From Thalia democratica (lineage: Eukaryota): a DNA stretch of 64,000 bases. Position 1 is the first letter of the stretch; the number at the start of each line of letters is the position of its first letter. Position numbers and translations under genes: made by a program. The stretch covers positions 63,240,001 to 63,304,000 of the forward strand of contig OZ241829.1 of NCBI GenBank assembly GCA_965202585.1. The letters run 5' to 3'. Shown in pieces: positions 11,062-63,626 of this stretch. Below the pieces are notes generated by a model. That model made no database searches. It saw only the letters and a list, made by a program, of their open reading frames with translations, and was not told the origin of the DNA.

Positions 11062-11063
<2 letters not shown>

Positions 11064-11132
<69 letters not shown>
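11064..11132. repeat. (GTT)23 microsatellite
   Basis: Direct read. The paralogous site at 60008-60049 has (GTT)14. Absent from copy B. Confidence 0.97.
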
Positions 11133-36567: not shown

Positions 36568-37129
36568 AGTTTAAATTTACTTTAATAAAAATTATTTAAT
36601 AATATAAAATAAAAAGCAGTTGGGATAAATTTATATACTAAAAATTTAATAGTAAACCAATTTGTAACAAAATATAAAAAACTTAAAATGAATAAAGTAG
36701 TTAAAATTAGACAAAAATTACAATAAAAAACTCAGGTATGAAAAAATCAATAAAATTTTATAAACTGTTATAAAATTTTATACAATGTTAACAAAATTCA
36801 AGAAAATACTTAAATTTGTCTAAAAACAATTTAAGTATCTTGCTTATAAAAAAAGTCAATAAAATTAGCCACTAGCACACAGGAAAAGGTGATTCTACTG
36901 GAAGACAATAAACTTCACTCCAATTCTTTCCTCAGAACTCAGACTACTCTCTCTAACAATGACCCAAGCTTACAATAGTCCTTTCCTTGACTGAAGACTA
37001 TTGTTATAGCAACAATTTCAAATTTCTTGTACTATAACTTGTCAACATCTCATTTGTTGTTGTTTTAAGCTTTCCCAACAACAAATTGTTTCCAATTAAA
37101 AAATAGAAATAAAATAACGTATCGTTACA
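36396..37129 (-). repeat. 5' LTR (734 bp)
   Basis: TGTAACGATACG...GGTTTCA on the minus strand. Matches 29578-30311. Confidence 0.96.
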
Positions 37130-42532: not shown

Positions 42533-45500
42533 TATGACATCATACCTACTTTTAATGTTTAAACAAGGTAAAAAATCATATTAAAAAAGGTTTGGCTGGA
42601 TAAAAACTATTTAAAAGATAGTGAGCTTTTTCATGCTTGTTAATTAATAATACAGTTTAGAAACAGTTAATTGGATAAAAGTTTGTTTTAGATTCACTTT
42701 CATTCTGAAAACAAACTTTGTCCGTTATGTTTAAATATATAAGTTAACTATCTTTGTAGTTTAGCTTTGTTTTAAAAACATATTTTAAAATTTTAGCTTT
42801 CAGCATGCATTTTAATAATAAAAAAATATCAATATTTAGTTAAGTAAAAGTATTTTCCTTTCAGGCTAGACAAAACCTATGTAAGTCTCTAGGCACTGAA
42901 ATATTTATATTGATCAGTATATATCTTTCCCAGCTAAATTATGAATTTTTAATGTTAAATGAAATTGACGTAAAAAATTATTAGTAAGACGTCTTTAAGT
43001 TATTAGAAAGAAAAAAAAAACTGGCTAGAAGTTTTACTTGTTATAAAAAATGCTTATAGTTTCTTGGATTTTTTTTTATTTTAAATAAATTTTTAATACA
43101 TAAGTACACAACAGTAAAATAAAAAATTTAAGTACAAGAGTTATGAAACTGTATTTTTTAATATCTTGGAAAACCTTGGAAGTATTAAGTTAAATTACTA
43201 CATTACTTCTTCTATATGTTTTTAACAATAGTAATTTAGAAAGTTTGTGAATATTTACAGTACACTATACGTATAAATTAAACGAAAGAAAAAATATATA
43301 GAATCAACTATTAGTAACATGGATGTATTTAGATGTTTAACTACAACTATGTTACTTACCTTGAATCGAAAACTATTGAGAAAAAGTCATTTAGAAAGTA
43401 AGCTTTATTAATATTTAACAATTAAGTTTATTTTAAATGCATAATAGACGAATAAATTAAAAGTAAAATAATAATAAAAAACAGCAGGTTAAGTGAAAAC
43501 ATCTTTAGTTGTACTCAGTATATAATTATATAACTTATCGAAATTTTTATCTTTAAACCACATTGAAGAGTTGCTTACAAAAGTAAATTTAAGACCCAGC
43601 ATAACAAATTAATTATACATTGTTTTTTTTGTTTGTAGATTTAAAAAAAAATTAATAAGGTGAGTTTTGAAAATAAGTTAAAATACTTTTACAAGTTACA
43701 ACACAAACAAAATAAAATATTTAAGTTTTTCTACAACTAATTCAAAATTTAAGTTTTTGTTTGTTACTAATATAAATAACAATCCAATACTTTTCATAAA
43801 AGTTTTAATATATTTTCACTGAAACTGTTCAGAAAACTACTGCAGACATTTAAAATAAAACAATAAACTTTAGAAAATTACTTAAGTGATTAGTTAGATT
43901 GCTGTAAAAAAAACATTCAAAAAAACTTTAGATTGTTTACATAGTCTGTTTACTTTCTGTTTACATAGTTCAGTTTTTATAAAGTTAAATATAAATTTAG
44001 GTGTATGTTTATTTACTCTCGTTTTTAGATGGTTTTGTTTTTGGTTTTTATATTTCACTAAACGAAATAAAACTAGTACAATGTTAAGCAATTTTTTACT
44101 TTTGTATTGAGCAGTTTTTAAAATCAAAATAAAAACAAAATATAACATTTTAAATGATCTTCCACCAACTAAAACTAAACCCTAGATGAATTTTAACAAA
44201 CAAAAAACTTTCAAAAAACTGTTAATTTCAGTAGTTTGTTTAGCGAAAAATATTTATCTCCAGTGTTTTACTTGTCTAAAACGCTTTTAGTAATGCACTT
44301 AGTGGTTATTCATGCCTTAATTTTCACCAACTTAACAATAGTAGTTTTTTTTTGAACAGCGTTTCAAATATTCAAGCGTCAGCAGTTTTGTTTCTAAATC
44401 GTCTAGGGAATTTACTGTTTTACTAATTGAAAATTAAAACGCAAAAACATCGATTGAATTTTACCCCGAGTTGACTTTGTTACTGACATTTGTTTCTGGT
44501 TTGAATTAACTTTTCAATCTGTTTAATGGAATTTGTCTTGGTTTGGAAAATGGTAAACTGCTTAAGTTGATTGGTTGGAAAAAAATTGCCTGAACAGATG
44601 TTTGATTTGTTAAAAAGATTAAAGAATTGATAAATGAAGTGTAGAAAATATATTGTACTTTGTTACAGTACAACAATGGTTTTTTATTTAGTTATCGAAT
44701 TAAAAAAAAACAAACCTAAATTTGGATGATAGTTGGTCTAATAACAGTTTATGTAAACTTAAATATATATTTTGCATTTTTTATTAACTAGTAGATGTAA
44801 ATTCAAAAATCTGGTGCGTTTAGCTTTAATTAGTCAATAAAAATAAAGTTACAAACTATACTAAACTGCCATAGAAAAAGTTCTAATAAAATCCTTAAGT
44901 AGATGTAATATTTAAGTGAGTTGTAGCATTTGTTATATTTGTAACACCCTATTTAAAAGTTACACTTAAACGAATATTTTAGAGTACATCCATATTTATA
45001 TACATAATTTACTTTTCAAAATCTGTAAATACAAGTAAAAATCTTGTGAAAAATGGCACGAAAAGTTTTTTCGACCTGTAATTAGTTGTAAAAACTTTTA
45101 TCGATGTTTGCTTCAACGAGTGGTTAAAATTAGTACGTTATGTACATAAGAAAATAAACACTATGGAGAAAAATTACCGGTAAAAGGAATGAAAGTTATG
45201 AATGATTTATACGCTACGTAAATTTTTTAATGATTTTCTCTTTTCTAATGTTAGTTACCATAGTAACTAACTCAAGTTTATATTAAACAAGATCAAAAGG
45301 TTAGGTTGATTCCGCCCGGCTTTAATACTTTATTGTTTTTATTTTTAAAACAAAATAGCTTCTATTTTGACGAATATGTAGTTTACTTACTAGAAAACTA
45401 GCTAATATGAATTTCTTAAATGTTGTCAAAAGGTCAAAAAAAACTTATTTGTTTGAATATAAACTTATTTTTGTATCATTAAGCTTAAGTTATTTGTAAA

Positions 45501-45544
45501 CAAAAAAGTCGCACACAGTAAATAAAAACTCAAAAGATAAGATT

Positions 45545-46744
45545 TTAACACTTATGTTGAAATATGACTAGTGTATGTGTCTTATAGTATGGTTTTAAGA
45601 AAATACTCAAGTAGTTATAAACCATCTGGGATGAGAACCTTTTAAAGCTCAATACTGCGGTTCTACTCTAATGTACGAAAAAAAAACAAAAAAGAATTAT
45701 AGCCTTTCTTATTTACTAATGTGTCTTAGAAATATTTTTCATATTAAACTCAAGTTATTAGCTTATTATTATTTTTTATTACCTTAAAAAACAAAAAAAA
45801 AAATTTAACCTCTCTCTTTAAAACTTTTGATCTGAAAAAATCAACGTCTACTGCATTGTGCTCATTATGAAGTTGCATGGAAACTTTTAAATATTCATTC
45901 AACTTGTAACTGTTTAAAATGAATTTTATTAAATATTAGCTAACGAAGTTGAACAAACTAGCAAAAATCAATTAAGGCCGTTGACGATAGTAAAAATGTA
46001 AGAGACCTAGTAAATAATTGTTATATGCTTTAAAAAAAAACGAGTTACTATAAGTTTTTAAGTTGTGTATAAATTTTTATATTAGTTGTGGTAACAAATA
46101 TTATTTCAATTAAATGTAGTTTAAACTTGTTTCGAAGGTGATATAGCTGATGTATGTTTATTAAAACATTTTAAAATTATCAGATGTGTTATTGCAAACA
46201 ATTTTTTAACTATTTACCAATTAAGAGTTGTAAAATTCAATAACACGAAATATTTTGTTCAGCTACTTTTTGAGATAAATATTATTTTTTCTCAAACAGT
46301 AAGTAAACGAGTATAAAAATTCAATTAACTGTTTTCTTGAGGTTGAAACAAAATATTTTTTTTATTGTTGTTACAACTTTTAGCTATGTAAAAAAAAGTA
46401 CATCAATATATGGTCTTTTGTCTCAAAATATAAAAATTCTTAATAATATTAGAATTAAATTTATAGCATAGTTTTATCTTTAGCTTATAACAAACTTTAT
46501 TTGGTTATACGAAACCAAAACATATTAAAAATAATATTCATACATGATAATACTTTTCTTTTCAAATAACTTACAAGAAATGAGTTGTGTTTGTCTGTTT
46601 ATAAAGAGCCATTTTGAAATCGTCCTCGGCCCCACAAGCTTTATTGAAAAAATTTGTGTACTTTGGTTTCACCGCATGGCCAGCCTTGTCTTTTTTATTT
46701 CTATCATCATGTTTTTCAGCCAACTTCTTTGAGGTCTGAGTCAT
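45545..46744 (-). CDS. Spliced orphan gene 'B', copy A' (exons 46744-46575, 45909-45810, 45667-45545)
   Basis: Same exon sizes and splice dinucleotides as copy A. Confidence 0.72.
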
Positions 46745-47058
46745 TTTTTGTTTTTATTTTACATTGGTACAAAATTAAAACGATTTGTTAAGTAGATAGA
46801 AGTATAAAAAAAATGATACCTACACAATTTAAACTTTAATGCATGATTAATTCGAAAAAGTTTGTTATTTTAATTAGTTTTGTTATATGAAATAAATTGT
46901 TTTAACGTTTTGAAAGACTAATTTTTTGTAATTAAACAGTATTTTCTTATAAAATCTAATATGTAAACTTATTTTCTTTGAAAATAACTGATCGTATAAA
47001 TAAATAGTTTTAAAACAAAGTAAAAGACTTATGTATTGTAAAATTAAACCGAATCATG

Positions 47059-50000
47059 CTAATCAAGTCTCACAGTGTTAGCAAGAACATCGACGTCAAT
47101 GGATTTTGAACTTTTAACGCAATCAGCATTGGATGAAGTTGTGTTTTCCGTTGTGAATTCGATGACGTTCGTTGACTTTACTATTTTCATATCAGCGTTA
47201 GTCGTTGCTTTTGTAAAAAGATTAAATTAAGCGTCAATTTGTCTAACCAAATTCACTTAACTAACTATAATAAGTGGCTTTGGTTTATGAATCTATACTT
47301 TCTGTGCATTAAAGAATTAATTCATATCACATTAAATTGAAATGCTTCAAAGCAAGTAGAATAAATCATTTTTGGTTTTTTAAACAAAATGAATAATTAA
47401 TAAGTTTGAAGACAATAAACAACAAAAGCTTTTTAGCTTTAGAATTTAAAACTACTTTTTACATTTCTTTGACAGTTTGACAGCTGAAATGTTATAAATA
47501 TGAATATAAATCGTTTATAAAATCAACAAATTGAAATTGCACATAAATAGAAAATAAAAATTAATAAAAATATTATTGAATGATTCATTAAAAACTTTAA
47601 AACTACAATTTTATTAAAATAGGAATTTAGTAAATATTGATTACAATCTTAGCTCAATGCAGCATATAGCTACTTATTGAAAACCTCCAAGCCATAAGGT
47701 TTTTGCATAAAACTGCTTTACTAATTACTTGATTAACGTTAAAATTTACCCGCTTTGATTTTAATGCTAAAGAAACAAAACTTTTATTAACAATTGAATC
47801 ATAGTTAACTAGCTCTTTATTTTGTGTTTAGGCCTCTGCAAAATAATTAAAAATATATAAATCTCATAAAACAAAATGTTTTAAATACGTAAGTCTAAGA
47901 AGCAAAAAAAGACTTTGTATATTTTAAATACTTTTAGTTTGTTTAAACATAAATTGCAAAAACAGACTACAAAGATTTATACCACAGCAATGTTCTTATA
48001 GTGTTTATAACAATTTAATTACTAAAACGTATAAAATTAGTAACTAACGTTTTACCAATTGAATACTAGCATAGTAAGTGCCTGTAAAATCTTCAACATA
48101 ACAAGATATTGTTCCATTTTTCAAATTTTCTTCTTCAACTGTCACAGTAGATTTTGAAATCGTGTAGTTTTCAGTGACTCCAATCGAGAACGAAACACCT
48201 TTTTGAATTTACTATTTCAGGGGTCGGCTTAGTTTTAAGAATTGAAAGCGGTGAAAAAATTGTTGTAATAAAATTGTATTGTAAAAATTATTAAGCTTCA
48301 TGGTGCAAAATAACAAAATATTTAACTTTTTTTTGATAATTGAAATCAAACTAAAAACTAACTTTTCATACAATTATTACTTTTTTACAATTAATGATAA
48401 CTTTAAACATTTTTCAAAACCAACCGAACACGGATATTTTCAGATAACTGGTATCGGCCATCCGGGGCCTCCTGTCAACCAGGCAGTTGAAGGTCACGCT
48501 GCTGTTGGCAACCAGGGTCTGGTTCACGATCCCCCACCCCTCTAAGCTCTCCCCCCTCTTGAATATGACGTACACTCGGGTGCGGTAGCAAACACTGTTC
48601 TCGTACACGTCTGAGTGGTTGAGAGACGGGAATTCGGGGTGGAGATTCTCGCTTTTGCTCTTGCACCCCAGTTTCGTCCACCTGGCGACGAACTCCTCGT
48701 CGCTCGTTGCTAGGTAACGGGCAAACGCAATGACGTCACAATCACAACGAAGGTTGTCGTTTGGGTGCAGCCCAAGATCGGTGAGGTGACTCAGCCGCGT
48801 CATGACGACGTCGTCGTTGCCGGGCAACGTCAGGAGGCGGTTGTTGTTGAGGCTGAGGTGGGTGAGATTGGGGAGGTCTTCGAGGCAGCTCCAAGGAAAA
48901 TGTTCGATTAAGTTGTCGGTGAGGTACAACCTAAACAATAAATTTGTACACTTGGATAAAATTTTAACCAACTGAAACTGAGTCGGTATTGATAAAATAT
49001 CAAATAATGTATGTTTTAAAATTAAGTTTATTAAAACTTAGATTTAGAAAAATTACTAACCCAGAGAACATAAATAAGATTCAGCTAGTTATTTTAAATG
49101 AATTTGATATCATTAATTTTCAAATATTATATCTATTTTTCAATGTTTTTAAATTCAAGCCTTCTAACCAACTTTCTTAATAAGCCAAGATTTTTAAATG
49201 CACTTTCGTTTATGCTGACTATTTGATTGTCTTCTAGTTTCAAAATAAGAACATTTGGCAGATCTTTAAACATCTGTAATTTTTATTTTACTGTTACATT
49301 TAATTTGTATCTAATTTATTTAAATTTTGTTTTTTTACTAAAATTCATGTAGAAAATAACACTCCATTCTATTAAGGATAATCAAGTTAACAAGTAAAAA
49401 AAAATATCCTGGACAAGACCTTAAAAAGTATCCGTGGTGTTCGACTCGATTAGCAAAAGGTTTTTTCGAACACTAGGTCCAAGGACCAAAAATTTTGAGC
49501 AGTTTCTTTTTTGTCCTTAAATAAACAACATATGAATAGCCAAAAAAACCCTATTTCTAGTGTAAAAAGTATTGACTTATTATTTTTTAAATTTTCGTAA
49601 AGCTATTATTTTTACGATTTTGTACACATACTTCTTGTTAACATTATATTTGGCAAAACTAAACTTATACTTTTTATTTATTTTTTCATCAAGTTTTATA
49701 CTTTTAAGAAACTTTAATCATATACTATTTGTGGGCATAAACTAATTCTGATTAAATATAAAACGTTTTGAAATTGAGATTTTATTTCATGTTTAGGGAT
49801 AAAGTTTATTCGAACAAATTTTTGATCTAACAGAAAATCTTTAAAAAATAAGCTTGTTAGAGTAAATAAAACTTGGTCAAGTAAAAAAAAACTTACATTT
49901 GCAGTTAAATTTCTCATATTTTCTTGTCTCAGTCTGAACATTGTCACATTTGACGGAACATCTTTAAAATAGTTTGTGCTTTTGTAACTAGAGCAACTGA

Positions 50001-50281
50001 CATAAAATCCTTTTTCTGTATCCGTTTCTGAATAGTTCTTACAACTGTTAAAAAAATAGATTAATCGATATATCTTTCTACTTGGCGGGAAATTTGTATA
50101 AATATTTAATACGATTTCAAAACTGTCTTAAAATATCCAAATATTCTTAAAATAAAAAAACTATTAAAAACAAATAGTAAAACTAAATAAAAAGTTACCT
50201 GCAGTTTGTTAAGCAAGATTCACAAAACTTTACATACAAGTTTGTTAAAATGAACAGCACATTATAATCAAATAACTTCAT
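47059..50281 (-). CDS. LRR-Ig protein, copy A', intact 378 aa
   Basis: Exons 50281-50199, 50044-49897, 49273-49173, 48930-48425, 48198-48049, 47207-47059. Has CAA at the codon that is TAA in copy A. Confidence 0.87.
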
Positions 50282-53158
50282 GTTTAAGAGAATGTATTCT
50301 AAGCTGTAATAAGCAGTTTTTATTTTAGATAATTTTGAAAACTATACCTTTAATAATTAAGATTTTTATATGCAATCCGCTATAAGATATTTAAAACAAA
50401 ATTTTAATTTTGAAGTTTTTTTCAAACTGAATAGAACTATAAAAAATAACTACTTTACTGAGAATGTACTTGATTTACCTCAAAAAAAACACTTCATAGC
50501 TTTGAACAAATAGTTTTAACTAACATATTTGCTTCTGAACATTGCAAGACAGATCAACTTGTGGTTTTGTTAACACATCAAAATACTTGAGAGTTTAAAC
50601 TATTGATTTTACAAGAAGTAACGTTGCGGCTTGTTTAAATCCCTTTTTTTTAAGTTATACGCTTTAAATGATGTTTTCTTAGCAAGCTTAATTCTAAACT
50701 ATTCTAAATCTTCACTGACTTAAAATTTTAATTTAAAAAAAACTAATCACCGAAATAAATATGCTGTAAATATTAGTAGTTTAATTGAAGTAGTAAACAA
50801 ATTTATAAACTATATTCTCTGTAACGATAACTTTTGGTTCTTGTTATTGAATTTTTGATGTTTGTTTACAAACTAAGATTTGATTTGAAAAAAGTATTCT
50901 TAAAACAAAAGTCTTTGTATAGATAAGTAATATTACAGCTAAAAACTAACACAGTTAAGTTTTGCTTATTTTTATAAACATTTTCAATAATGTTTAGTAG
51001 CATAATTTTGATTTTTTTGTAGTCTAAGTTTTATTTTGTAGTTTTATTTTGTATATAAAGCATAAGTCTGTATACAAAAAATAACCATAAACTTCAAAAA
51101 GTTTTGAAATTAACGTAAAAAACTAGTATTAAATTGATTATATTTTAATTTTCAGATAAAACAACTTTCAATTCTTGTAATTCCTTACCAACTTATTAGT
51201 AAAAAGAAACTGAGCTCATGCGATGAAAAAATATCGGTACTAAAACACAAAACTTTCTATACCCAGCTTTACTCTAAAGTAAATTCTCGCCTAAAAAAAT
51301 TCATTAAACCGAACAAAAAAAGCGTGATAAAATTTAAAACAAAAAATAATTAAAACGAACAAAAAAAGCGTGTTGAAAGTTAAAACACGCTTTTTCTTTT
51401 TCCAATTGATTAAGGTAAACAAACAAAATTGTGGAGATGTGAAACTGCTTGCATGTTGAGGCGAAGACTTGTGTTGACTTTATTAAATATTCATATTGAT
51501 TTTCTCTGTTTTATTGTTGGCAACCGACTGACTCTTGGATGGTGTCAACTGTTAAAGTAGAAGTTAATAAATCACGATCAGAATACTTGTCAATAGATAA
51601 AATATTTTTTTTCGGTTGTTTATTTTTTTCAGAGTGAACTCGGAAATGACCTACCCAATTGACAATTTGTGATTATATACGATTAGTTTTCAAATGAGTG
51701 TTTCTCATTGGTGAAATTTAAGTGAAAAGTTAAGTAAAAAATACATTAAATCAACTTTATCTTTGTCAGTAATTTATGATTGAGATTCTTGTTGATGACA
51801 TAATAAAATTCAAAGTGTTTTGAAGTTTGTAAATAAAGAGTAAATTTTAAAATATAAACTTTAATCTATTCTTAAACTATATTTTAATTTTTTAAAAGTT
51901 TTAGTTTTTATTGTTTTAAAATTTTATGAAAATGTTAATAAAAACATTTCAATAAATATAAATTTTGATATTAAATTCAAGTCATAAGTAGATAAAGTGT
52001 AATGTTTTGATTTTTAGTATTTTTTTAGCAGCACATTTAATTTTTAAGCAACTTGTAAATTTTAAAACGTGTCCGGTCTTTTTGTTTTTTTAACACAAAA
52101 AATATTATTTTTATTATTTATTTACTAAAAATGATATTTAAATGTTGTAAATATATCATTTTTGTATAATTTCATTTATGTTTTATTTTAGACTTTACTT
52201 TTTTATCATTTTTAATTCTAATTTGAATTTTAGTTAGTTCTTCTCCATATTATTAGTGTTTTATTAGAAAAGATTTAACGATTATATGTTTCAAAATTAT
52301 TATGTACAAAAATTTTAAATCTAAATTGAGTAATTTATTGAACAACTTAAACCTTGGTTAAATAGTCATGTATTAAAACGGGTTAAATTATTCTTGAATA
52401 AGATTTGATTAACTTACACTAACCTTGAAATTCTGATTTTTTTATTAATACCTAGTTTAAACTTTAAAAATTACGTTCATGTGGACTGCATTTAACCCTT
52501 AATAGGCAGAGGACCCCAACCGAGTCTTAATTAAAACTTAAATTGAATAAATAAAATGATAAAAAATGTTTACATAGTTTGTTATTAGTTTGTTTTGTAA
52601 TATCTTTACGTGTTATATTTTATACCCTCAGTCATATAAAAAGAATTAATAGGCGTATTTAAGTGCTAGTTTTGCTTTAATATTGTTCTTATATTACATA
52701 CGGTTATAAAAAACACAAAACTATATTCTAAAATAAAAAGAACTGCGAGTTTTTTAAGGCAAATAAAAATTATAAAGCGAAATTGCGAAAAATATGCTAA
52801 AACTTTAGATAAATCAAAGTGTTTTTATACTTTTCATTCTATCCAGATTCTTTAAACTGCAAAAGTTTTTTGTACACCAAGTCCTTGGACCAAACTTTTC
52901 AAGATTATCTTTTGTTGTTAAATAAATAATAGTTCAATTTTTATTATACAAAATAACTTATGACATTCATAACTAATTGCAAATAATTAATTTAAGTTAG
53001 TGCTTGACTATTTTTGAAAATGATTCAACTAACAAACTTATTGGTGCAATTAAAATTTTCTCGTAGTTTGATATATATATTTTTATAAACATAACAGCTG
53101 TTTTGAAATTTTATAGAGCTTTATTAAATAAAAACAAATGTTTAAGCACTGCTTTGGT

Positions 53159-53201
53159 TTATTACCGGTTTCGGTGGGCCTTAGCCGACCTTTTCAAATA
53201 A
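53159..53201 (-). ncRNA. Minimal type I hammerhead ribozyme (U3-A8 variant) at the 3' end of the left PLE arm
   Basis: Exact reverse complement of 58040-58082. Confidence 0.75.
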
Positions 53202-53465
53202 TTTCAAAACAGTAAATAACATTTAGACATTGGCAGTAATGTGAATCTGAACTCATTGATGCGTAAAAAAATAAATAAACATTAACTATTCAAATTTTAA
53301 TGAAAAATGCATAATAAGGTGAACTAAATATTGGTATTAATTAATAAATAAAAATAAAAGAAATTAAAAAACTAAATGCAGTAATATAAACGGAAACACA
53401 ACAAATTCTTAACAAAATTCTGAAAAAACTAACGGATGATTAAAATGCTAAAAATATTTAAATTA

Positions 53466-55637
53466 TTAGGTTTTAGACTCATTCCAATAGAATAATAAAA
53501 ATTTGTTTCTGTGCCTGCAAGAGCTCATTACTTCTGATCTTTTGTTAATACAGTTCTTATCTGCTTGTAGGATCTTTAATGCTTCTTTCAAGCACAACCT
53601 GCACGTCTCGATTCTCGGTCTTGATTCATATTCTTTTTCCAGTATTGTCCAAGTCAATTCATAATTCTTATTTTCGTTCTTCAATGTGTGGATGTATTTT
53701 GATAGCTCAGTTGCTTGTTTGTATTGAATATAATTTTTATCTTCTGGGTTGCTATTTATTGTCGTTCTGTGGGTTGCCACTCTTTTTTTAAATTGGTTGG
53801 CGCTTAGACCAATATATGATTTAGTTGCATTGTCAGTTTTTACTGTGGCTTGGTATATGACATTTTTTGCTCTACAGTTACCGCCTTTCAAAGGACATTT
53901 CTCTTTGTTTCTACAGTTACATGTTTCATCTTCATCATTCTTGTTGCAGTTTGTGAGCTTCTTGTTATGATTCTTTATGATTGTCTCAATGTTTGGCAAA
54001 CAGCTGTAACTTAATTTGATGTTGTTCTTATTCAAGTATTTTTTGAATTTACTGTCTACTCCGAAGTATTTGTTTATTATTTGGAGAAATTTCTTGCCAA
54101 TGTTTGTTTTTATTGATTTGCAGTATGGTGGATTAAACCATATTATTTTTCTTTTTCTTTTTCTAGGCTGTTTCTTTTCATCATCTTCATCTTTGAACTT
54201 TATTTTGTAATTATAGCCACTTAACTTTATTGCGTCATTGTAATCTTTACTTATTTCATTGAATAGATTTTCATTGCTAGAATTTTTGGAAAGTCTTTCT
54301 TCTATCATTTTTGGGATTTGTTTCAGTATTGCTGGAGGGTGGTTGGACTTTGAATTAATATATATAATTTTGCTGTTTTCTTTTCTATATGGTTGGAATG
54401 TGTGGTTGTATAGATTGAAGCTTAAGTCTAGATAGTTAATTTTACGTGAAGGATTTTCAATATCTAACTTTATTCCCATTTCTTTTGATATGTTGTGCAT
54501 GGATTTTTTAATTTTCTCTATATCAACATTACTTTTGTTTTTTTCTATGACCATTAAGCCATCGTCGCGGTACAATCCTGTTGTTAGGTTTGGGAGCGCA
54601 TTCCTGAGTTTATGAAGTATATAGAGACCTACTAGTTCGCATATTTCCGCTCCATGCTTACCTCCCATGGTGATGTCGAAAAGTTCATTCTCTTCTGTGT
54701 TACTCTTTCTTTTTACCCATACTTCTTCTTTGTTATGTAATACAGATTTAGATGCGTTTAAGATGATCTTAATTTCTTGTTCGCTTACTTTTGTACTTTC
54801 TTTTGCAAAAGCTAAGGCTTTACTTAATAGCTTTTCTGATATAGATGGGTAAAACTCCACAATGTCAAACTTCATGAACTTGTATTTGTGTTTTTTTAGT
54901 TTTTTGTACCAGTTTAAGACTTCTTGGGAACTTCGCCACTGTAGGTATTTGGTTGATTTTCTTAATACATTGTTGATTCTGTCAATTATACATTTGCTAA
55001 TTTGACCTATGTCTGAATAGCTAGGATTTATTAATCTTGTTTTGGGATTGCTGGCGAAATCCTTTTTGTGGTCTTTTAGCGTTATATAGCATTGTTGCTT
55101 AGGTAAGTGGTTTACTAATTTCTTTTCAAGTTTTAGATTTGTTACTATTTTTTTGGCTTCTTTATTTATCTCATTCATAACTGTTTTGTCACTTTTTTTA
55201 TATGATTTTCGGATCGATTTTAGTAATAGGCTGTCGTATTCTAATTTAGGAATCTTGTAGTAGTTGTTTGTCTTGTCGGCTGGTACTATTAGGCTTTTGG
55301 TTTTGCCTATTTGTCTTAAGTCTTTTTGAAGCTCTTGTTGGAATTTGTCTTTAGATTTTCTAAATTTAACTTGATTAATTAGATCGAACATTTCATTTTC
55401 AAAATTCTTGAGTTCTTCAGGTTGCTTAGGTGTGAATTTTGATTTGAAACCATATGTCTCTTTATTTTCTATCATGTCTGTGCTATCTTCATCATTGGTG
55501 CAGAAGTAAAGTTTGATTCTAATTCGTCTACAGAAACTTCTAATTTTTTCCATTAACTTTATTTTGTATTCTATCTTATTGCATAAAGGAATGTTCTTAG
55601 TTGAATAATTAAAATTCAGCTTTTCATATGCTGCCAT
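53466..55637 (-). CDS. Penelope-like RT + GIY-YIG endonuclease, full-length intact ORF (~723 aa from first ATG)
   Basis: DIVEFYPSI, ITMGGKHGAEICEL, YRDDGL, YLDL, HPP, WFNPPY, CNC..C zinc motif, VIYQAT...YIGLS. Confidence 0.95.
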   Translation of the reverse strand: MAAYEKLNFNYSTKNIPLCNKIEYKIKLMEKIRSFCRRIRIKLYFCTNDEDSTDMIENKETYGFKSKFTPKQPEELKNFENEMFDLINQVKFRKSKDKFQQELQKDLRQIGKTKSLIVPADKTNNYYKIPKLEYDSLLLKSIRKSYKKSDKTVMNEINKEAKKIVTNLKLEKKLVNHLPKQQCYITLKDHKKDFASNPKTRLINPSYSDIGQISKCIIDRINNVLRKSTKYLQWRSSQEVLNWYKKLKKHKYKFMKFDIVEFYPSISEKLLSKALAFAKESTKVSEQEIKIILNASKSVLHNKEEVWVKRKSNTEENELFDITMGGKHGAEICELVGLYILHKLRNALPNLTTGLYRDDGLMVIEKNKSNVDIEKIKKSMHNISKEMGIKLDIENPSRKINYLDLSFNLYNHTFQPYRKENSKIIYINSKSNHPPAILKQIPKMIEERLSKNSSNENLFNEISKDYNDAIKLSGYNYKIKFKDEDDEKKQPRKRKRKIIWFNPPYCKSIKTNIGKKFLQIINKYFGVDSKFKKYLNKNNIKLSYSCLPNIETIIKNHNKKLTNCNKNDEDETCNCRNKEKCPLKGGNCRAKNVIYQATVKTDNATKSYIGLSANQFKKRVATHRTTINSNPEDKNYIQYKQATELSKYIHTLKNENKNYELTWTILEKEYESRPRIETCRLCLKEALKILQADKNCINKRSEVMSSCRHRNKFLLFYWNESKT

Positions 55638-55793
55638 TGTCACTTTGTGTCAATTGAAGGTGGCTCAACTATTATTAGGGGCCTTGCTGTATTATTGAAA
55701 TTGACTGCAAAAAAAGTGCTCAACTTACACAATGTAAAGAGCTAAATATAATAAAAACAAATGTTTAAGCACTGCTTTGGTTTATTATTATTA

Positions 55794-57775
55794 TCAAATC
55801 AAAATTCACACCTAAGCAACCTGAAGAACTCAAGAATTTTGAAAATGAAATGTTCGATCTAATTAATCAAGTTAAATTTAGAAAATCTAAAGACAAATTC
55901 CAACAAGAGCTTCAAAAAGACTTAAGACAAATAGGCAAAACCAAAAGCCTAATAGTACCAGCCGACAAGACAAACAACTACTACAAGATTCCTAAATTAG
56001 AATACGACAGCCTATTACTAAAATCGATCCGAAAATCATATAAAAAAAGTGACAAAACAGTTATGAATGAGATAAATAAAGAAGCCAAAGAAATAGTAAC
56101 AAATCTAAAACTTGAAAAGAAATTAGTAAACCACTTACCTAAGCAACAATGCTATATAACGCTAAAAGACCACAAAAAGGATTTCGCCAGCAATCCCAAA
56201 ACAAGATTAATAAATCCTAGCTATTCAGACATAGGTCAAATTAGCAAATGTATAATTGACAGAATCAACAATGTATTAAGAAAATCAACCAAATACCTAC
56301 AGTGGCGAAGTTCCCAAGAAGTCTTAAACTGGTACAAAAAACTAAAAAAACACAAATACAAGTTCATGAAGTTTGACATTGTGGAGTTTTACCCATCTAT
56401 ATCAGAAAAGCTATTAAGTAAAGCCTTAGCTTTTGCAAAAGAAAGTACAAAAGTAAGCGAACAAGAAATTAAGATCATCTTAAACGCATCTAAATCTGTA
56501 TTACATAACAAAGAAGAAGTATGGGTAAAAAGAAAGAGTAACACAGAAGAGAATGAACTTTTCGACATCACCATGGGAGGTAAGCATGGAGCGGAAATAT
56601 GCGAACTAGTAGGTCTCTATATACTTCATAAACTCAGGAATGCGCTCCCAAACCTAATAACAGGATTGTACCGCGACGATGGCTTAATGGTCATAGAAAA
56701 AAACAAAAGTAATGTTGATATAGAGAAAATTAAAAAATCCATGCACAACATATCAAAAGAAATGGGAATAAAGTTAGATATTGAAAATCCTTCACGTAAA
56801 ATTAACTATCTAGACTTAAGCTTCAATCTATACAACCACACATTCCAACCATATAGAAAAGAAAACAGCAAAATTATATATATTAATTCAAAGTCCAACC
56901 ACCCTCCAGCAATACTGAAACAAATCCCAAAAATGATAGAAGAAAGACTTTCCAAAAATTCTAGCAATGAAAATCTATTCAATGAAATAAGTAAAGATTA
57001 CAATGACGCAATAAAGTTAAGTGGCTATAATTACAAAATAAAGTTCAAAGATGAAGATGATGAAAAGAAACAGCCTAGAAAAAGAAAAAGAAAAATAATA
57101 TGGTTTAATCCACCATACTGCAAATCAATAAAAACAAACATTGGCAAGAAATTTCTCCAAATAATAAACAAATACTTCGGAGTAGACAGTAAATTCAAAA
57201 AATACTTGAATAAGAACAACATCAAATTAAGTTACAGCTGTTTGCCAAACATTGAGACAATCATAAAGAATCATAACAAGAAGCTCACAAACTGCCACAA
57301 GAATGATGAAGATGAAACATGTAACTGTAGAAACAAAGAGAAATGTCCTTTGAAAGGCGGTAACTGTAGAGCAAAAAATGTCATATACCAAGCCACAGTA
57401 AAAACTGACAATGCAACTAAATCATATATTGGTCTAAGCGCCAACCAATTTAAAAAAAGAGTGGCAACCCACAGAACGACAATAAATAGCAACCCAGAAG
57501 ATAAAAATTATATTCAATACAAACAAGCAACTGAGCTATCAAAATACATCCACACATTGAAGAACGAAAATAAGAATTATGAATTGACTTGGACAATACT
57601 GGAAAAAGAATATGAATCAAGACCGAGAATCGAGACGTGCAGGTTGTGCTTGAAAGAAGCATTAAAGATCCTACAAGCAGATAAGAACTGTATTAACAAA
57701 AGATCAGAAGTAATGAGCTCTTGCAGGCACAGAAACAAATTTTTATTATTCTATTGGAATGAGTCTAAAACCTAA
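55794..57775 (+). CDS. Penelope-like RT + GIY-YIG, 5'-truncated second copy
   Basis: Identical to the minus-strand protein from KSKFTPKQ onward except K/E, T/I and N/H. Confidence 0.92.
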
Positions 57776-58039
57776 TAATTTAAATATTTTTAGCATTTTA
57801 ATCATCCGTTAGTTTTTTCAGAATTTTGTTAAGAATTTGTTGTGTTTCCGTTTATATTACTGCATTTAGTTTTTTAATTTCTTTTATTTTTATTTATTAA
57901 TTAATACCAATATTTAGTTCACCTTATTATGCATTTTTCATTAAAATTTGAATAGTTAATGTTTATTTATTTTTTTACGCATCAATGAGTTCAGATTCAC
58001 ATTACTGCCAATGTCTAAATGTTATTTACTGTTTTGAAA

Positions 58040-58082
58040 TTATTTGAAAAGGTCGGCTAAGGCCCACCGAAACCGGTAATAA
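58040..58082 (+). ncRNA. Minimal type I hammerhead ribozyme (U3-A8 variant) at the 3' end of the right PLE arm
   Basis: Stem I UUAU/AUAA; core UUGAAAA; stem II GGU-C-GGC(UAAG)GCC-C-ACC; GAAA; palindromic stem III ACCGGU; cleavage triplet GUA (after 58078). Confidence 0.75.
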
Positions 58083-60005
58083 ACCAAAGCAGTGCTTAAA
58101 CATTTGTTTTTATTATATTTAGCTCTTTACATTGTGTAAGTTGAGCACTTTTTTTGCAGTCAATTTCAATAATAGAGCTTTATTAAAAAAAATTTAAAAC
58201 GTAAAACATATAAATTAAAAAAAAATCTTTATTAATGCTGAAACCTAAAACAAAAACATTCTTCTAATACTGTACTATAAATTTGCTCATTATTTGAAAA
58301 AAAAACATTTTCTAAGAGTTTTTTAACTACTAAATTTGAACAAAATCAAGCATTTATATTTGATATAATTAAGTTTATTTATGAAGCTTAATAATCATAC
58401 TTATTTTACACATAAGTACAACAATAAATATTGTTAAACTCAATTAGAAATAGCTTGTTTTGAACTAATACACTAACCTTCCACTTAAGTACGAATAACT
58501 TCGGTACGCACTTTTTAGCCGAAAACTGCTGTGTTCAAAATGCAATATTTTTACTTTGAAATAAAAAAACAAATCTAAAAGTATTATATTGTAAAACTAA
58601 TTATACTGTATCAAGTTTAGATAAAACATAACTAAAGGAGCCAGAAAAAAGTTATGAACTTACAAAGTGTATACTAAATCAAACATTTAAAACAAAAACA
58701 GTGCAGTTTATTAAACGAAAATGAGGAACAGTGCAACTTAAATTTGCACACCCCATGATTAAAAGATGAAAAATATTTTTTTGAAAGATAGTACAAATTT
58801 TATATTTAAAAATAATCAATTAAATTTTAAATACCCAATGATTGAAAAATAAATGTAAAAAGCATATGAAAAACGATATTTATGAAAATAAAGAACATAG
58901 CAACTAAAGTTTGTTTAAAACTAAGTGCTTTTAAAACATGTCTATTAGTTTAGCTTGTCGTTTGGTTTAGCAGAAACTTTTTGTTGCTCGCTATGGAAAT
59001 CAAAATCTACAATAATCACCTTTTCTTCTTTAGAGCAACCACCATTTTATCCTTTACTATTGTGTAGACTACCAAGACAAACAGTTTAAACGCAATAAAT
59101 TGATAATGATAAGTAGGTAGGAGTAAAACTGTAAAACCTCAAATAAGCTTTTTTGAGTAAACACAAGTTAACAAAAACATAAGCAATATTTTCAGAAATA
59201 TTTATTTATTAAAGAATTATAACTAACTATACTATGCAATTGTTAAAGGTACAAGGAAATAACAGACACACTAAAAAATTTTGTGATTAAAAAACAAATG
59301 TACACATAAAGTCTGAAAACTGCTAAATCTTTAAACAAATCTTCTAAATCTTTAAATTATGCTGAAAGTTTTTGTTTTGGGGGATTTTAGAGTAATAATC
59401 AACTGTAAACTTTAGTGGCTTTTAACAATTTTGTGTTAGGTTAATTAAAGATAATAAAAGACCAAAACTTATTGGGTAAGCAGTAGGCATTGCCGGTTGG
59501 GTACGCACTTTTGCGCTGTGTTCAAAATGAGTACCTAAGTGAGAGGTTACTGTATTACTCTAATCCTCAATTAACTTGGAGTTGCATTTTCGAAAATACT
59601 ATAAACTTTCATGTATAAAAAATTTTTTACATATTTATAATAACAATCCTTGATTCTTTATTTATCTGACGACAGTTTAAAAAACGTCACAAAACATTTT
59701 TACTGTATCCGATAAAGATTTACTAACTATATTTTTTTATAAATCATACTATTTCAATAATGAGGTTTGACACAATTCTTTTTTTTATAGGTGAGTAGAA
59801 ATTTGTAAGAAACTTCGGTAAACGTTTGTTGGTAAAACTAATAAGTAATTTAATCAACCGTTGGTTTAATTTTGAGATTTAGCTTCGTCCATAGTTCAAT
59901 TTTCAAAGCAGTACCTTTCCTCTATAAATCAAGAGAACTTTTTAAAGAGTTTAATAATTATTTATCTGGCCAGTCTATTGTTAAAGTGCTTGGGTCTTTA
60001 GGTTT

Positions 60006-60007
<2 letters not shown>

Positions 60008-60049
<42 letters not shown>
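60008..60049. repeat. (GTT)14 microsatellite
   Basis: Direct read; paralog of 11064-11132. Confidence 0.97.
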
Positions 60050-61854
60050 AGTCAACGCATTTAAATATTTGCTGTGTATCGTTCTACATCAATAAGTAGT
60101 AATAAATAACTATAAGTTTGTTGTTTAAAACTTTGCTTTATATGTTAATGTATAAATTTTGTATATATCATATTAAAACATGTTTTTTTCTTTGTTTTAA
60201 ACACAATGAACTTTTTGTGTTGTTTTTATGGTTTATTTTTTTAATTATTTCGTTATGTGTCTTTTTTCTGTTTAAAGGTTCTAGATTTTGATGCATAGGT
60301 CCATCATATGGACAATAAACTTACAATAATAATAACAATATAAAAACTTATGTAATATTTTTATTATTTTTTGTGCTACTTCTGCTATTAAGCCTATAAA
60401 AAGTCCTTCGGCAATTGGAGGTCATTTACCTAAGTATACGGAATGCTACAAGTATTATAATGATAATATATTTAAAACTTTTACTAAAGTATGTATTATA
60501 TTTCACTTCAGTTATAAGAATCCCTTATTATAAAAACATTTAAGACAAAGTTGTGAAAACAAAACTTTGTTTAATTTTACACCACTGATTTGCATAAATT
60601 GTAATATATATCATTTTTTTCAATTTTAATATTATTTAAACTTTTTACTTAGTTTAGTTTAAAAACTTTTTTTTAATTGCGTAAGCATATTTTATTGTAG
60701 ATGATCAGAAACTTTAAGTTTTTTATAATATAGTTTATTCCTTTCTATGTGTACATCAACTAAATTCTGATAGTAATATATTACTTCAAACGTTTTCATA
60801 GCAGATTTTTTAATTTTAGTTTATATAATTTTTAAACATGTATGTATATATGTTATTGTAATACCCTTTTACCATCTTAAGTTTCTATTTACTTGCTTAT
60901 GCTTAAAAAAGTATAGTTTGTTTAATTTTACCGATTTCTTAACTAAACAGTATTTATTTTACATTTTTAATTTAAACTAGTTATGAAATATCTATTATCA
61001 AGCTTTCATAAACATTAAAAATAAATTCTTTATTTTAGCTTTAATTGTACACAAAGATTGTAAAAAAGGGTGTTTCAAATTTTTTACTTTAATAATAAAT
61101 GCAAAGTATATGTCCTTAATCTTAAACAATTATTTAATGATTTTTGTGAGGAAAAAAAGAATAAAATTACGTCAATAAAATATCGATGTATAATTTTTAA
61201 TTAATTTCAAACTATCTTTTTTCAAAACAACACGTTTTAGAAAACGCAATGGAAAATGCATTTATTATAAATGATCTTATGAATGCAATGCTGACTGCAG
61301 TAGAAGAAAACTTGTCAGCAAACAGTTTAAATGCTATTCAGCAGCAAACTAGCTTTGAAAAAGCGAATGAGATTGTTGTATATAATAATGACGTACCAAC
61401 TCAAACTTTTGAGCTTTGTAGTGGAAACAAAACTGAGTCTAATTTGAAAAATGAGTTTGAGTTCTTAAATGTTCCTTCGTTGGTACAAAACGAAAGGAAA
61501 GACAGCCTTATAACGGAGAACTTTGATGAAGTTAAAAATGTGGATGCTTCTTTCAAAATGGTGATTGACTCCACTGAAAACAATGAAGTGGAAAACAACA
61601 TTCCTGAAAACGAGCAACAATATGACATTGTTTCTATTGATGCAGGAAAAGACTGTCTAAGGAGTGTAAAAGCTGAATCAAGCATTGAAGTTTCTACTGA
61701 GCTAGGAAAGCAAAGAAACTTTGACATGGGAGATAACGATGCACAAGTTTCTGTAAAGAAAAACAATGAGGTAATGAAACTTGGAAGTGAAATGTTAATT
61801 GATAATAAATTATCTGAAAAAGACAAAAATATTGAAGAAGTGTTTAGTTTTAGC

Positions 61855-63626
61855 TAGTGATGTACCGGACTCACTATCCGGGTCCGGCCGGATATTGCCA
61901 CTTTTGTCTGATATCCGGATCCGGCCGGATTCTAATTTGAAAAAAAAATCCGGATCCGGTTCCGGCCGGACTCTAATTTGAAAAAAAAATCCGGATCCGG
62001 TTCCGGCCGGATTCTAATTTGAAAAAAAAGTCCGGATCCGGGTCCGGCCGGATCCTAACAGAGATCCGGCCGGACCCGGATCTTGTTAGTATAAAAGAGC
62101 ATACTGAAAAGTATGTTTTCAAAAACAAACCCTGTGTAAATTAATAAGAGTCATTTTTGTCAGTTAAAATTAAACACCTACCGTGATTGGCTCATTTTGT
62201 ACACGTGACTAATTTACATTTGTATACATTTAAACTATGAAATAAACATTTCAGAAATGCAACTCTTTATATATGTTGTAAAATTGAAAACTTTGGAATG
62301 AATACTTGCATTATTTATTGTTTAAATTTGAGCTCAGAGAATATTTAGAGTAAATACGGTTGAATGTACGAGCTAATGAGAATCATATGACGAAATGTTT
62401 CAAACTATATACTGATGCAACAAAACATCAGAACATGACAGGCAGATTATATGTAAGCAGTTAGTTAGTTTGCTTTGCAGCTTGAAGCAACAAAATATCT
62501 TGAACTTTTTTGTGAATGCTTATTGTAAGTAGTGTTTTGTTTTAAAAGTGAATATTTCAACTGGTGTTTAATTGTATAAATATTTAAGCCAGGTTTATAG
62601 TTTAATAGTTATTTAAAAATTTTACAGTTTTATTTAATTTTTAGTTTATTGTTTTAAGTCTTTTGATATAGACTTAAATAGCTTCCAGTTTTTAAAGTGT
62701 TACCAAATTAATTAATAGTTTTGTATATGCTAGTATTTCTTGTTGTGTTTTATATAAAAGATTTATCACTCAAAACTGTCGTGTCTGATTATAGAAAATA
62801 GTCTCAGTTAGAATTTAGAATTTTTTAGATATTAATTAAATAAGGTAAGATTTAGTTATGATGGGTAGTACTAATAAGTTAAGTGTACCACAATCAGTCC
62901 ACAACTTTACTACCAAATTGTCAACCTTTGCTAGCTGTTCTACTGATTATTAGGTTAAAGTATTTTTTTCAGTTTTTAAAAACCTCATTCTGACTCAGGC
63001 TGGTTTATACTCACTCTAGCTAGTTTTGTTGACTTAAACAGTAGCAACACTGCTAGTTTAAAAATTTTTGGGAATTTTAGAAAATCTTGGACTGCCTAAG
63101 GCTAGTTTAGTCTTTTATAAAACTCAGGCTAGTTTTCTTTTAGATTTTGAATGAGCTTGAGCTGATCCAGTTTTCAATATTTTGTAATTTTCTAGTGTAT
63201 TTTGTTCAAGAACTTGATTTCAGATTTTTAATTGTAAATAACACCTAAATTTGTAAACCTTGTGGCTAGCTGTTCTACTTATTATTAGATTAAAGTTCTT
63301 TTTTTTTTCAGTTTTTAAAAACCTCATTCTGGCTCAGGCTAGTTTATAGTCTAGTGATGTACCCGGACTCACTATCCGGGTCCGGGTGCGGCCGGATATT
63401 GCCATTTTTGTCTGATATCCGGATCCGGCCGGATTCTAATTTGAAAAAAAAGTCTGGATCCGGTTCCGGCCGGATTCTAATTTGAAAAAAAAGTCCGGAT
63501 CCGGTTCCGGCCGGATTCTAGTTTGAAAAAAAAGTCCGGATCCGGTTCCGGCCGGATTCTAATTTGAAAAAAAAGTCCGGATCCGGGTCCGGCCGGACCC
63601 GAAATTGTGGGTCCGGTACATCACTA
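61855..63626. mobile_element. Non-autonomous hAT element, 1,772 bp, composite
   Basis: Perfect 16-bp TIR TAGTGATGTACCGGAC / GTCCGGTACATCACTA, 8-bp TSD GTTTTAGC (61847-61854 / 63627-63634) and ~42-bp CCGG-rich subterminal tandem repeats. Confidence 0.95.
63352..63626. mobile_element. Internal complete 275-bp hAT MITE forming the right end of the composite
   Basis: Second left end TAGTGATGTACCCGGACTCACTATCCGGG at 63352. No TSD of its own (TTATAGTC vs GTTTTAGC). Confidence 0.88.

Follow-up and report, generated by a model that had tools for sequence, protein, structure and literature searches.

A head-to-head pair of Penelope-like retrotransposon copies within one target-site duplication in Thalia democratica, and its probable origin by priming from both nicked target strands

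We analysed a stretch of 64,000 nucleotides from Thalia democratica (contig OZ241829.1, forward-strand positions 63,240,001 to 63,304,000), hereafter referred to as the window. It contains a head-to-head pair of one Penelope-like element (PLE), which forms a 5,045-bp insert [53127-58171] flanked by two copies of a 14-bp target-site duplication (TSD). From left to right, the insert comprises a minus copy of full length, a filler of 6 nt and a plus copy truncated at its 5' end. Positions are given in the window, and positions in the element (ref) follow the minus copy. The features are the following:

53113-53126, no strand: left TSD copy, ATAGAGCTTTATTA, present as a single copy in each of five paralogous empty sites
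53127-55787, minus strand: full-length PLE copy, one 2,623-nt unit and a short tail; used as reference, ref 1 being 55787
53127-53162, minus strand: short tail, reaching 36 nt beyond the predicted cleavage site, of the end class ref 38-45
53150-53211, minus strand: candidate type-I hammerhead of the minus copy, mirroring 58030-58091
53466-55643, minus strand: intact open reading frame (ORF) for a predicted telomerase-like reverse transcriptase (RT) and C-terminal GIY-YIG endonuclease
55686-55787, minus strand: 5'-terminal 102 nt of the minus copy, equal to the plus-arm tail 58077-58178 with 1 mismatch
55788-55793, no strand: central filler TTATTA, between the 5' ends of the two copies
55794-58171, plus strand: 5'-truncated copy, beginning at ref 341, 63 codons inside the ORF
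58030-58091, plus strand: candidate hammerhead of the plus copy
58079-58171, plus strand: long tail, extending 93 nt beyond the predicted cleavage site to family position ref 98
58172-58185, no strand: right TSD copy, 14 bp
9246-9259, no strand: empty target site of the closest flank paralog, in the same window

The initial annotation placed a single 14-bp TSD around a full-length minus copy and a truncated plus copy, and this is what we find. The 14-mer occurs exactly twice in the window, starting at 53113 and 58172 (its chance at a given site is 4e-8), and the one duplication encloses both arms, with no separate TSD for each. In alignments, five local paralogs of the flanking segment have an uninterrupted empty site, composed of the left flank, a single 14-mer with 0-2 substitutions, and the right flank. 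The closest paralog lies inside the window, where segment [1-9266] matches [43881-53134] at 96% and segment [9246-11105] matches [58172-60049].

The arms were detected as an inverted repeat [53112-55447 and 55794-58129]. The element overlap proper [53127-55447 and 55794-58114] spans 2,321 bp with exactly 3 mismatches (99.87% identity), located at 53945/57296, 54583/56658 and 55151/56090. All three are nonsynonymous (K165E, T354I and N567H), so the annotated overlap and its three amino-acid changes are correct. A stretch of 57 nt in the tail of the plus arm is absent from the minus arm, and 340 nt at the 5' end of the minus copy are absent from the plus arm. In the plus copy, a residual frame of 641 aa runs from an ATG at 55850 to 57775. 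The 102-nt repeat of the plus-arm tail at the 5' end of the minus copy is the usual terminal redundancy of the pLTR type.

Both outer junctions are 3' ends of the element and lie past the predicted cleavage site, by 36 nt (53127) and 93 nt (58171), which agrees with the distances annotated initially. The second distance rises to 100 nt when the long-tail end is extended to 58178 across a microhomology with the TSD (6 of 7, ATAcAGC/ATAGAGC). At the short-tail junction, the TSD and the would-be next element sequence are similar at 9 of 14 positions. The 5' end of the minus copy is at most 2 nt from the predicted cleavage site. The filler, read initially as TAT, is the hexamer TTATTA; its length becomes 8 nt when the start of the minus copy is placed exactly at the cleavage site. 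The hexamer is identical to the final 6 nt of the TSD, and likewise to the terminal hexamer of the minus copy [55782-55787]. In 24 public sequencing runs, available as Logan contigs, the contigs are short and break at the repeat. Pieces of the element are present in a metatranscriptome run, which is not proof of transcription.

The ORF of the minus copy encodes 725 aa when a GTG is taken as its start, or 723 aa when read from the ATG at 55637. Pfam RVT_1 did not match the ORF, Pfam gave no useful result on the ORF and 16 relatives, and sequence searches of the PDB found no match; the protein was identified by fold searches. The AF2 model of the RT domain (pLDDT 93) has as its top PDB fold matches the telomerase RTs 6zdq, 3du5, 7lma and 7trd, followed by other RTs, and the modelled RT has a telomerase-like fold. 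The YRDD motif C and the FDIVEFYPSI motif A are unchanged across 97 relatives. The C-terminal 166 aa were modelled with a pLDDT of 84.5. The best fold match of this endonuclease is the catalytic domain of I-TevI (Z 9.1, rmsd 2.3, 89 of 92 residues), with T4 EndoII (Z 7.6) and the GIY-YIG domain of UvrC (Z 5.8) as further matches, and the top Foldseek rows are GIY-YIG throughout. The conserved positions include VIY...YIG, R621, H625, E687 and N700. The models thus point to a GIY-YIG endonuclease joined to the RT in one ORF. Invariant or nearly so are D123-K124-T125, C575-x-C577-x5-C583, C681-xx-C684, E687, N700 and C709-x-H711. The relatives have an RWK motif, and the present copy has RIK.

The initial annotation referred to a ribozyme site. 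A candidate layout is indeed present, but it is not a canonical hammerhead. In the plus copy, the core UUGAAAA [58044-58050] is followed by helix II [58051-58068], GAAA [58069-58072], a palindromic CCGG and GUA, with predicted cleavage after 58078 and a helix I of 4+7 bp. All family copies have UUGAAAA where CUGANGA is expected, in a type-I layout with GAAA, a palindromic helix III and GUA. Rfam detected no hammerhead at the locus (E<=1) or in 20 relatives (gathering threshold). Rfam models miss minimal PLE ribozymes of this kind, and hammerheads were therefore sought by a motif scan, which found the canonical CUGANGA...GAAA on the sense strand in 64/80 metagenomic relatives. In the listed metagenomic relatives, CUGANGA...GAAA is followed by a palindrome and GUA/GUC, in the same order as in the Thalia element. 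Judged from its sequence, the Thalia hammerhead is a non-canonical candidate.

The Hydra clade of PLEs is described by the change of DKG to DKT, a linker CxCX5C, CxxC and CxH around the conserved E and N residues of the endonuclease, the absence of CCHH, and a unit below 3 kb (Craig et al. 2021, PMC8557442). By its motifs and its 2,623-nt unit, the element appears to fit this clade of C-terminal EN+ PLEs. It shares with the clade the unit below 3 kb, the single ORF, DKT, CxCX5C, CxxC / CxH, an aquatic host and hammerheads in relatives. However, its hammerhead core is UUGAAAA (U3/A8) and not the canonical CUGANGA. Furthermore, its TSDs are AT-rich unique sequence and not a (TA)n microsatellite; insertion into (TA)n is reported for almost all Hydra-clade families but is not strictly defining.

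The two arms differ from each other at 3 nt, from the nearest other copy at 6-8 nt and from the median copy at about 18 nt. If the arms had come from different source copies, their private variants might have been traced to them, as the initial annotation proposed to check, and this comparison was negative: each of the 3 differences is a singleton that none of about 35 other copies has. Moreover, 2 private variants are common to both arms, which are each other's closest relatives. The private singletons and the shared private variants argue against two different source copies, and we reject this origin. Both arms probably come from one source lineage, possibly from one RNA molecule. Neither arm can be copied from the other, as neither is nested in the other, and a snap-back (self-primed hairpin) cDNA is rejected on the same tail and 5' sequences.

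A survey of the family for the same architecture, proposed with the initial annotation, found it at nine further loci, each with its own TSD and arm lengths. A single TSD of 10-16 bp encloses 9/10 of the head-to-head pairs, and TSDs across the family measure 10-20 bp, none being of 6. The outer end is at ref 38-45 or at ref 98-100 in every copy examined. Tail type and pairing are associated (Fisher p = 1.1e-6 in an unbiased sample of 7 against 20): the short-site end is found in 20/20 non-inverted copies, while the long-tail start site (+96) is found in 10/10 head-to-head pairs and in 0/20 of the non-inverted copies examined. The partner of the long-tail arm uses the short site in 9/10 pairs. 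The new observation is thus that, among the copies of this family examined, the +96 start occurs only in head-to-head pairs, with the partner arm at the short site in nine of them. Of the first 7 pairs surveyed, 4 have the long tail on their shorter arm. The inner junctions are scattered from ref 1 to ref 2588, with 3-22 nt of filler in 5/10 pairs and 0-8 nt of overlap in the others. The short-site junctions have 0-8 nt of microhomology, mostly 2-8, and the long-tail junctions, which end at ref 98-100, have 0-3 nt and filler at none. In the other pairs the arms overlap by 70-1,722 bp, and the fillers are absent or unrelated to the TSDs. Partial-tandem or pseudo-LTR organisation and 5' truncation are also present in the family: there are tandem arrays (L006/L008), full units behind partial units that begin at ref 1801-2612, and numerous copies truncated at the 5' end. 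The 5' ends of truncated sense copies cluster at ref 91-95.

We consider it probable that the locus was produced by one retrotransposition event of a Hydra-clade PLE, in which both staggered target nicks were used as primers. The GIY-YIG endonuclease would nick the two strands 14 bp apart. The 3' end of the top strand would prime a cDNA at a default internal start, about 36-43 nt past the ribozyme site, and this cDNA would reach the 5' end of the RNA, which coincides with the predicted hammerhead cleavage site. The 3' end of the bottom strand would prime a second cDNA at a second start, 96 nt past the ribozyme site, and this cDNA would halt 340 nt before the 5' end of the RNA. Finally, the two cDNAs would be joined centrally through their 3' ends with 6 nt of filler, each templating the second strand of the other. 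The order of these events, how many RNA molecules took part and the way in which the cDNAs were joined are inferred.

Priming of its own cDNA by each nicked strand was already suggested by the initial annotation, and it remains the best reading. The one 14-bp TSD, the five empty sites and the single TSD around nearly all family pairs indicate a single event. The outer ends are taken as initiation sites because their positions are fixed in every copy, while the inner junctions vary and have filler or microhomology. By analogy, two-nick priming is supported by the biochemistry of a published PLE protein, which cleaves both strands and extends them, starting at two neighbouring internal sites of the RNA. 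The template would be a transcript exceeding one unit, since both tails extend beyond the ribozyme site. The multi-unit RNA proposed initially is therefore retained, whereas two source RNAs are not supported, the arm differences being absent from the other copies compared; a circular RNA is not needed. Against a single event, the final 6 nt of the TSD recur as the filler TTATTA, as they also would after a nested second insertion. Against two-nick priming, the start sites are alike on both strands in vitro, and the strict short-plus-long rule therefore needs an extra assumption, such as one RNA or an asymmetric dimer. The pair L032 has no recognisable TSD and one arm without a tail. In the pair L031, the inner 535 nt of one arm come from a divergent lineage, so more than one template can take part.

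A strict division of labour, in which the +36-43 site serves the first or only primer and the +96 site is used only when the opposite strand also primes, is a tentative and rather doubtful extension. If it were true, both cDNAs would come from one longer-than-unit RNA in a dimeric RNP, the second RT using strand displacement to follow the first on the same RNA. Such a model would explain the near-identical arms and why the tail is always on one end of a PLE pair.

An origin of the pair as one continuous cDNA is unlikely, although it is the strongest of the alternatives. Target-primed reverse transcription (TPRT) would begin on sense RNA from the short-tail site, the RT would jump to an antisense template, and synthesis would run off the 5' end of that template at ref 98. 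The template would be either an antisense RNA transcribed from a bidirectional promoter in the pLTR or a second cDNA. Arkhipova et al. 2013 already proposed an antisense template (PMC3846280), and the present scheme is a variant of their self-priming or antisense-template idea. The short-plus-long rule would be explained without added assumptions, and the long-tail end, precise at ref 98-100 with 0-3 nt of microhomology, resembles a run-off. The clustered 5' ends of truncated sense copies (ref 91-95) adjoin it and could mark a promoter or start region. However, long-tail junctions are without filler while inner junctions often have it, and fixed clean ends are what is expected from initiation sites. 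Moreover, extension of both strands in vitro proceeds from two internal starts, the tail being the interval between them, which makes an antisense RNA unnecessary.

Two successive insertions are very improbable. The truncated plus copy would have come first, with the 14-bp TSD, and the full-length minus copy later at its 5' junction, with TTATTA as a 6-bp TSD. The 6 nt between the arms do equal the last 6 nt of the left TSD, with a chance of about 0.002 at a given site. However, TTATTA is also the minus copy's own terminal hexamer, which leaves three possible sources for it. This identity and the 10-20 bp of the family TSDs lead us to reject a nested 6-bp TSD. Furthermore, the plus copy would be a unique exception among non-inverted insertions in its long tail, the fillers of other pairs do not match their TSDs, the arms are mutually closest with their shared private variants, and an exact strike at the junction is improbable in an 802-Mb genome.

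An inverted duplication at the DNA level, by replication template switch or hairpin repair of part of one earlier insertion, is hardly credible: fold-back repair can yield palindromes and the arms are nearly identical, but the 57-nt extra tail of the plus arm is contiguous with the unit end, an arrangement missing from the minus copy, the outer end lies exactly at the ref-98 site that recurs in 9 other pairs, and both arms are inside one TSD. Just as improbable is a chimeric long read formed by fold-back, or an assembly that wrongly joined two family copies; inverted PLE structures are known to trouble assemblies, but we reject an artefact on the unequal arms (340 nt extra at one 5' end, 57 nt at the other 3' end), the 3 differing sites, the non-inverted flanks, which form a TSD matching five empty paralogs, and the recurrence at nine loci with different arm lengths and their own TSDs.

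The locus can be compared with other known systems as well. In the twin priming of L1, reportedly described by Ostertag and Kazazian in 2001, the second nicked strand is said to prime on the RNA, so that one TSD comes to enclose an inverted segment, whose inversion junction has microhomology or filler. The segments are reportedly non-overlapping parts of one RNA, the second primer annealing upstream. The Thalia pair is alike in its probable second-strand priming, in the inverted segment within one TSD and in the junction filler or microhomology. However, its arms have 2,321 bp in common, each starting near the 3' region of the RNA, and L1-type twin priming is rejected on this overlap.

The shape of a typical EN+ PLE insertion is said to have been described by Evgen'ev and Arkhipova in 2005 and by Arkhipova in 2006. 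In such an insertion, an inverted 5'-truncated copy adjoins the 5' end of a full-length or truncated copy, with one TSD and a tail on one end only (Craig et al. 2021, PMC8557442; Arkhipova et al. 2013, PMC3846280). The Thalia locus and the nine others fit these descriptions, being head-to-head within one TSD with the tail on a single outward end, and the family has the same pLTR or partial-tandem copies and heavy 5' truncation. The locus is real, but its architecture is not novel, as had been implied; it is the standard published shape of a PLE insertion and ordinary for its element class. It differs in the tail interval, which is 57 nt here and usually quoted as 30-40 bp, and in the long inverted arm (2.3 kb), which makes the whole a 5-kb near-palindrome.

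The integration mechanism of PLEs is still termed undefined in the literature. In vitro, the protein of PAc, a Poseidon PLE of Anolis, nicks and extends both target strands (Frangieh 2024; PMC11167929). Its reverse transcription begins at two adjacent internal RNA sites, the genomic tail being the interval between them; the protein is a predicted dimer, and the top-strand and bottom-strand start sites are alike (PMC11167929). The Thalia element is similar in its two starts downstream of the hammerhead site, its AT-rich targets and its probable longer-than-unit RNA substrate. However, PAc is a member of the Penelope/Poseidon clade with start sites inside the ORF, whereas those of the Thalia element are upstream of the ORF. 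PAc starts are not homologous to the target, while the Thalia short-site junctions have their 0-8 nt of microhomology. Furthermore, PAc has no strand bias of starts in vitro, whereas in the Thalia family the second site is found only on the inverted arm. This young, high-copy family in a chromosome-scale assembly offers clean natural insertions, with exact TSDs, empty sites and arms that are 99.9% identical, and these agree with the single in vitro study of both-strand extension from two internal starts. They add to it the restriction of the second start to the inverted arm and the origin of the arms of a pair from one source lineage, and the tail-pairing rule makes it possible to test a specific model, in which a dimeric RNP copies one RNA twice.

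The head-to-head pair of Penelope-like element (PLE) copies at 53127-58171 is confirmed, and base-by-base comparison, together with a count of the repeated 14-mer, bears out the coordinates, overlap length, mismatch count and target-site duplication (TSD) of the initial annotation. The insert is composed of a full-length minus copy and a 5'-truncated plus copy, separated by a short filler.

Features of the head-to-head insert
53113 and 58172: 14-mer ATAGAGCTTTATTA, found within the window at these two positions only
53127-55787, minus: full-length copy, unit of 2,623 nt; 55787 is position 1 of the reference (ref)
53466-55643, minus: ORF of 725 aa, 1,245 relatives in a word search
55788-55793: filler TTATTA
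55794-58171, plus: 5'-truncated copy
58044-58078, plus arm: candidate type-I hammerhead layout, core UUGAAAA, helix II 3+3 bp, GAAA

A repeat search returned an inverted repeat of 2,336 nt (53112-55447 and 55794-58129), with its arms 346 nt apart, and a second inverted pair at 55686-55787 and 58077-58178. Identity of the element proper covers 2,321 bp (53127-55447 and 55794-58114) with three mismatches, all of which change an amino acid (K165E, T354I and N567H). The 346 nt are not a spacer; they consist of the extra 5' portion of the minus copy (55448-55787) and the filler. Together with the hexamer that terminates the minus copy, the filler forms a tandem repeat (55782-55793), and its sequence equals the final 6 nt of the TSD as well; it may have come from slippage at the RNA 5' end, from primer-end copying or by chance.

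When the assembly was searched with each flank, eight paralogs were found on the same chromosome in which the left and right flanks are contiguous. The five that were aligned run unbroken from the left flank through a single 14-mer into the right flank. Since these paralogs are uninterrupted, the 5,045 bp represent a single insert into a site that is empty in them, and since they hold one 14-mer, the 14 bp are a true duplication of the target. The nearest flank paralog lies inside the window (1-9266 against 43881-53134 at 96%, and 9246-11105 against 58172-60049); the insert flanks are part of a locally duplicated segment. This segmental duplication is large, with 91-96% identity (1-12944 against 43881-61855, and also 20456-29577), and no fewer than eight more copies lie on this chromosome within about 300 kb. 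Because the pair breaks one copy only, the PLE inserted after the duplication. A direct repeat of 737 bp (29575-30311 and 36393-37129, 99.2% identity, 6.8 kb apart), which is unrelated to the PLE, may stem from another young element, as its LTRs or ends.

A Pfam search of the 725-aa ORF gave no match. Its AlphaFold model (pLDDT 93) has telomerase reverse transcriptases as best fold matches, followed by other reverse transcriptases (RTs), and the C-terminal 166 residues, modelled alone, match the GIY-YIG nucleases I-TevI (Z 9.1), T4 EndoII (Z 7.6) and UvrC (Z 5.8). The ORF has the invariant motifs DKT, CxCX5C and CxxC / CxH around conserved E and N, which are those of the Hydra clade of PLEs (Craig et al. 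2021, PMC8557442); the unit length is also compatible with this clade. The closest Atlas protein clusters, from ctenophores and cnidarians, carry RVT_1, GIY-YIG and HTH_animal domains, and DNA of the element is present in marine metagenomes. The family adds a new and well-preserved member to the Hydra clade.

An Rfam search of the locus reported no hammerhead. In the candidate, a palindromic CCGG replaces helix III and is followed by GUA and a helix I of 4+7 bp, with cleavage predicted after 58078. The minus copy starts at most 2 nt from the predicted site, and the outer ends of the minus and plus arms lie 36 nt and 93 nt downstream of it. Every family copy has the UUGAAAA core (U3 and A8 for C3 and G8), including a 95%-divergent subfamily in which one additional position is altered; the U3/A8 double change is fixed, and the two core positions it affects pair with one another. 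Most metagenomic relatives (L058-L137; 37-45% amino-acid identity) were assembled as 2.4-2.7-kb units whose ends overlap directly, as in a tandem or pLTR structure. The canonical CUGANGA...GAAA is found on the sense strand in 64 of 80, and in the examples listed a palindrome and GUA or GUC come after it, close to the ORF; no Rfam model detects these type-I hammerheads at gathering score, as searched in 20 relatives. L121 and L128, among few such metagenome contigs, have inverted 3'-end fragments adjoining the 5' end.

The 802-Mb assembly holds hundreds of candidate family copies; forty were scored, and the minus copy served as reference in the analysis of 36 loci. Of the 20 non-inverted insertions, which are 5'-truncated, partial-tandem or tandem, all but a poorly aligned one at ref 53 stop at ref 38-45 beyond the unit boundary. 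Their TSDs, where recognisable, are 13-20 bp, and microhomology at the 3' junction is 0-8 nt (mostly 2-8). Seven loci, including the one studied, are head-to-head pairs, and a pattern search for the long-tail end added three long tails, all in such pairs. Each of the ten pairs has an arm that ends at ref 98-100, and in nine its partner ends at ref 38-45; the exception is L032, whose partner arm ends within the ribozyme and which has no visible TSD. A single TSD of 10-16 bp encloses nine of the ten. In the unbiased sample, the long tail was present in 7/7 pairs against 0/20 non-inverted copies (Fisher p = 1.1e-6). Inner junctions are spread over ref 1 to 2588, with filler of 3-22 nt in five pairs and overlaps of 0-8 nt in the rest, while none of the ten long-tail junctions has filler.

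Other features of the surveyed ends were noted. At the 5' junctions of truncated copies (L014, L015, L016, L018 and L022), the ends gather at ref 91-95, beside the ref-98 long-tail end, with others at ref 112-148. In two copies (L014:1458-1482 and L018:4058-4080) the 5' junction carries a direct duplication, 23-25 nt long, of ref 93-118. The pattern may reflect a transcription start, or a region bound by the RNP at which the RT stops. At L036:4315-4790 (G000 C7:56.75 Mb), the long-tail junction and about 160 nt of flank are repeated with a 347-bp period, which looks like a post-insertion tandem duplication.

Because the outer ends are fixed and the inner ends variable, we read the outer junctions as initiation sites and the centre as the place where synthesis ended and joining occurred. 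This geometry fits target-primed reverse transcription (TPRT) from both strands, in which a break with a 14-bp stagger would offer two 3' ends, each priming TPRT, and the two products would be joined centrally. The main rival, self-priming on an antisense template, is a version of the proposal of Arkhipova et al. 2013 (PMC3846280) and seems to us improbable. Neither arm was copied from the other, since tail and 5' sequences are not nested; this, together with the long-tail arm being the shorter one in four of the first seven pairs, excludes snap-back synthesis. L1-type twin priming is excluded by the 2.3-kb arm overlap.

The suggestion that each nicked strand primed its own cDNA is reasonable and agrees with published biochemistry; the idea of two source RNAs is unsupported. 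The arms differ by 3 nt, against 6-8 nt to the nearest other copy and about 18 nt to the median copy, and share two variants (ref 1173 and 2472) absent from every other copy compared. The check suggested initially, of arm-private SNPs against different source copies, comes out negative, as each of the three differences is private to one arm among about 35 copies. Both arms thus derive from a single source lineage, and the three differences fit RT errors or later mutation. Arms are mutually closest in other pairs too, as in L032 (10 nt apart, nearest other copy 14) and over the outer 1,175 nt of L031 (3 nt). One arm of the L031 pair (L031:3319-5034, G000 C1:113.07 Mb) is chimeric, with an inner stretch of 535 nt (ref 945-1480) that is at least 27 nt away from all copies sampled, which shows that another template can be drawn in. 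The chimera is consistent with the RT switching to a divergent RNA towards the end of cDNA synthesis, or with gene conversion afterwards.

The strict pairing of a short with a long tail suggests either that a single RNA carries both primers or that the dimer is asymmetric. A purified PLE protein cleaves and extends both strands, initiates RT at two adjacent internal RNA sites, the interval between which is the genomic tail, uses mainly unprocessed multimeric RNA and is a predicted dimer (Frangieh et al. 2024, PMC11167929); no difference in its start site was seen between strands, which leaves the strict pairing unexplained. The head-to-head architecture is already known. Typical PLEs have an inverted 5'-truncated copy adjoining the 5' end, most commonly head-to-head, with the entire insert enclosed by a single TSD and only one end bearing a tail, and their insertion mechanism was termed undefined (Craig et al. 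2021, PMC8557442; Arkhipova et al. 2013, PMC3846280). The pair studied here has exactly this arrangement.
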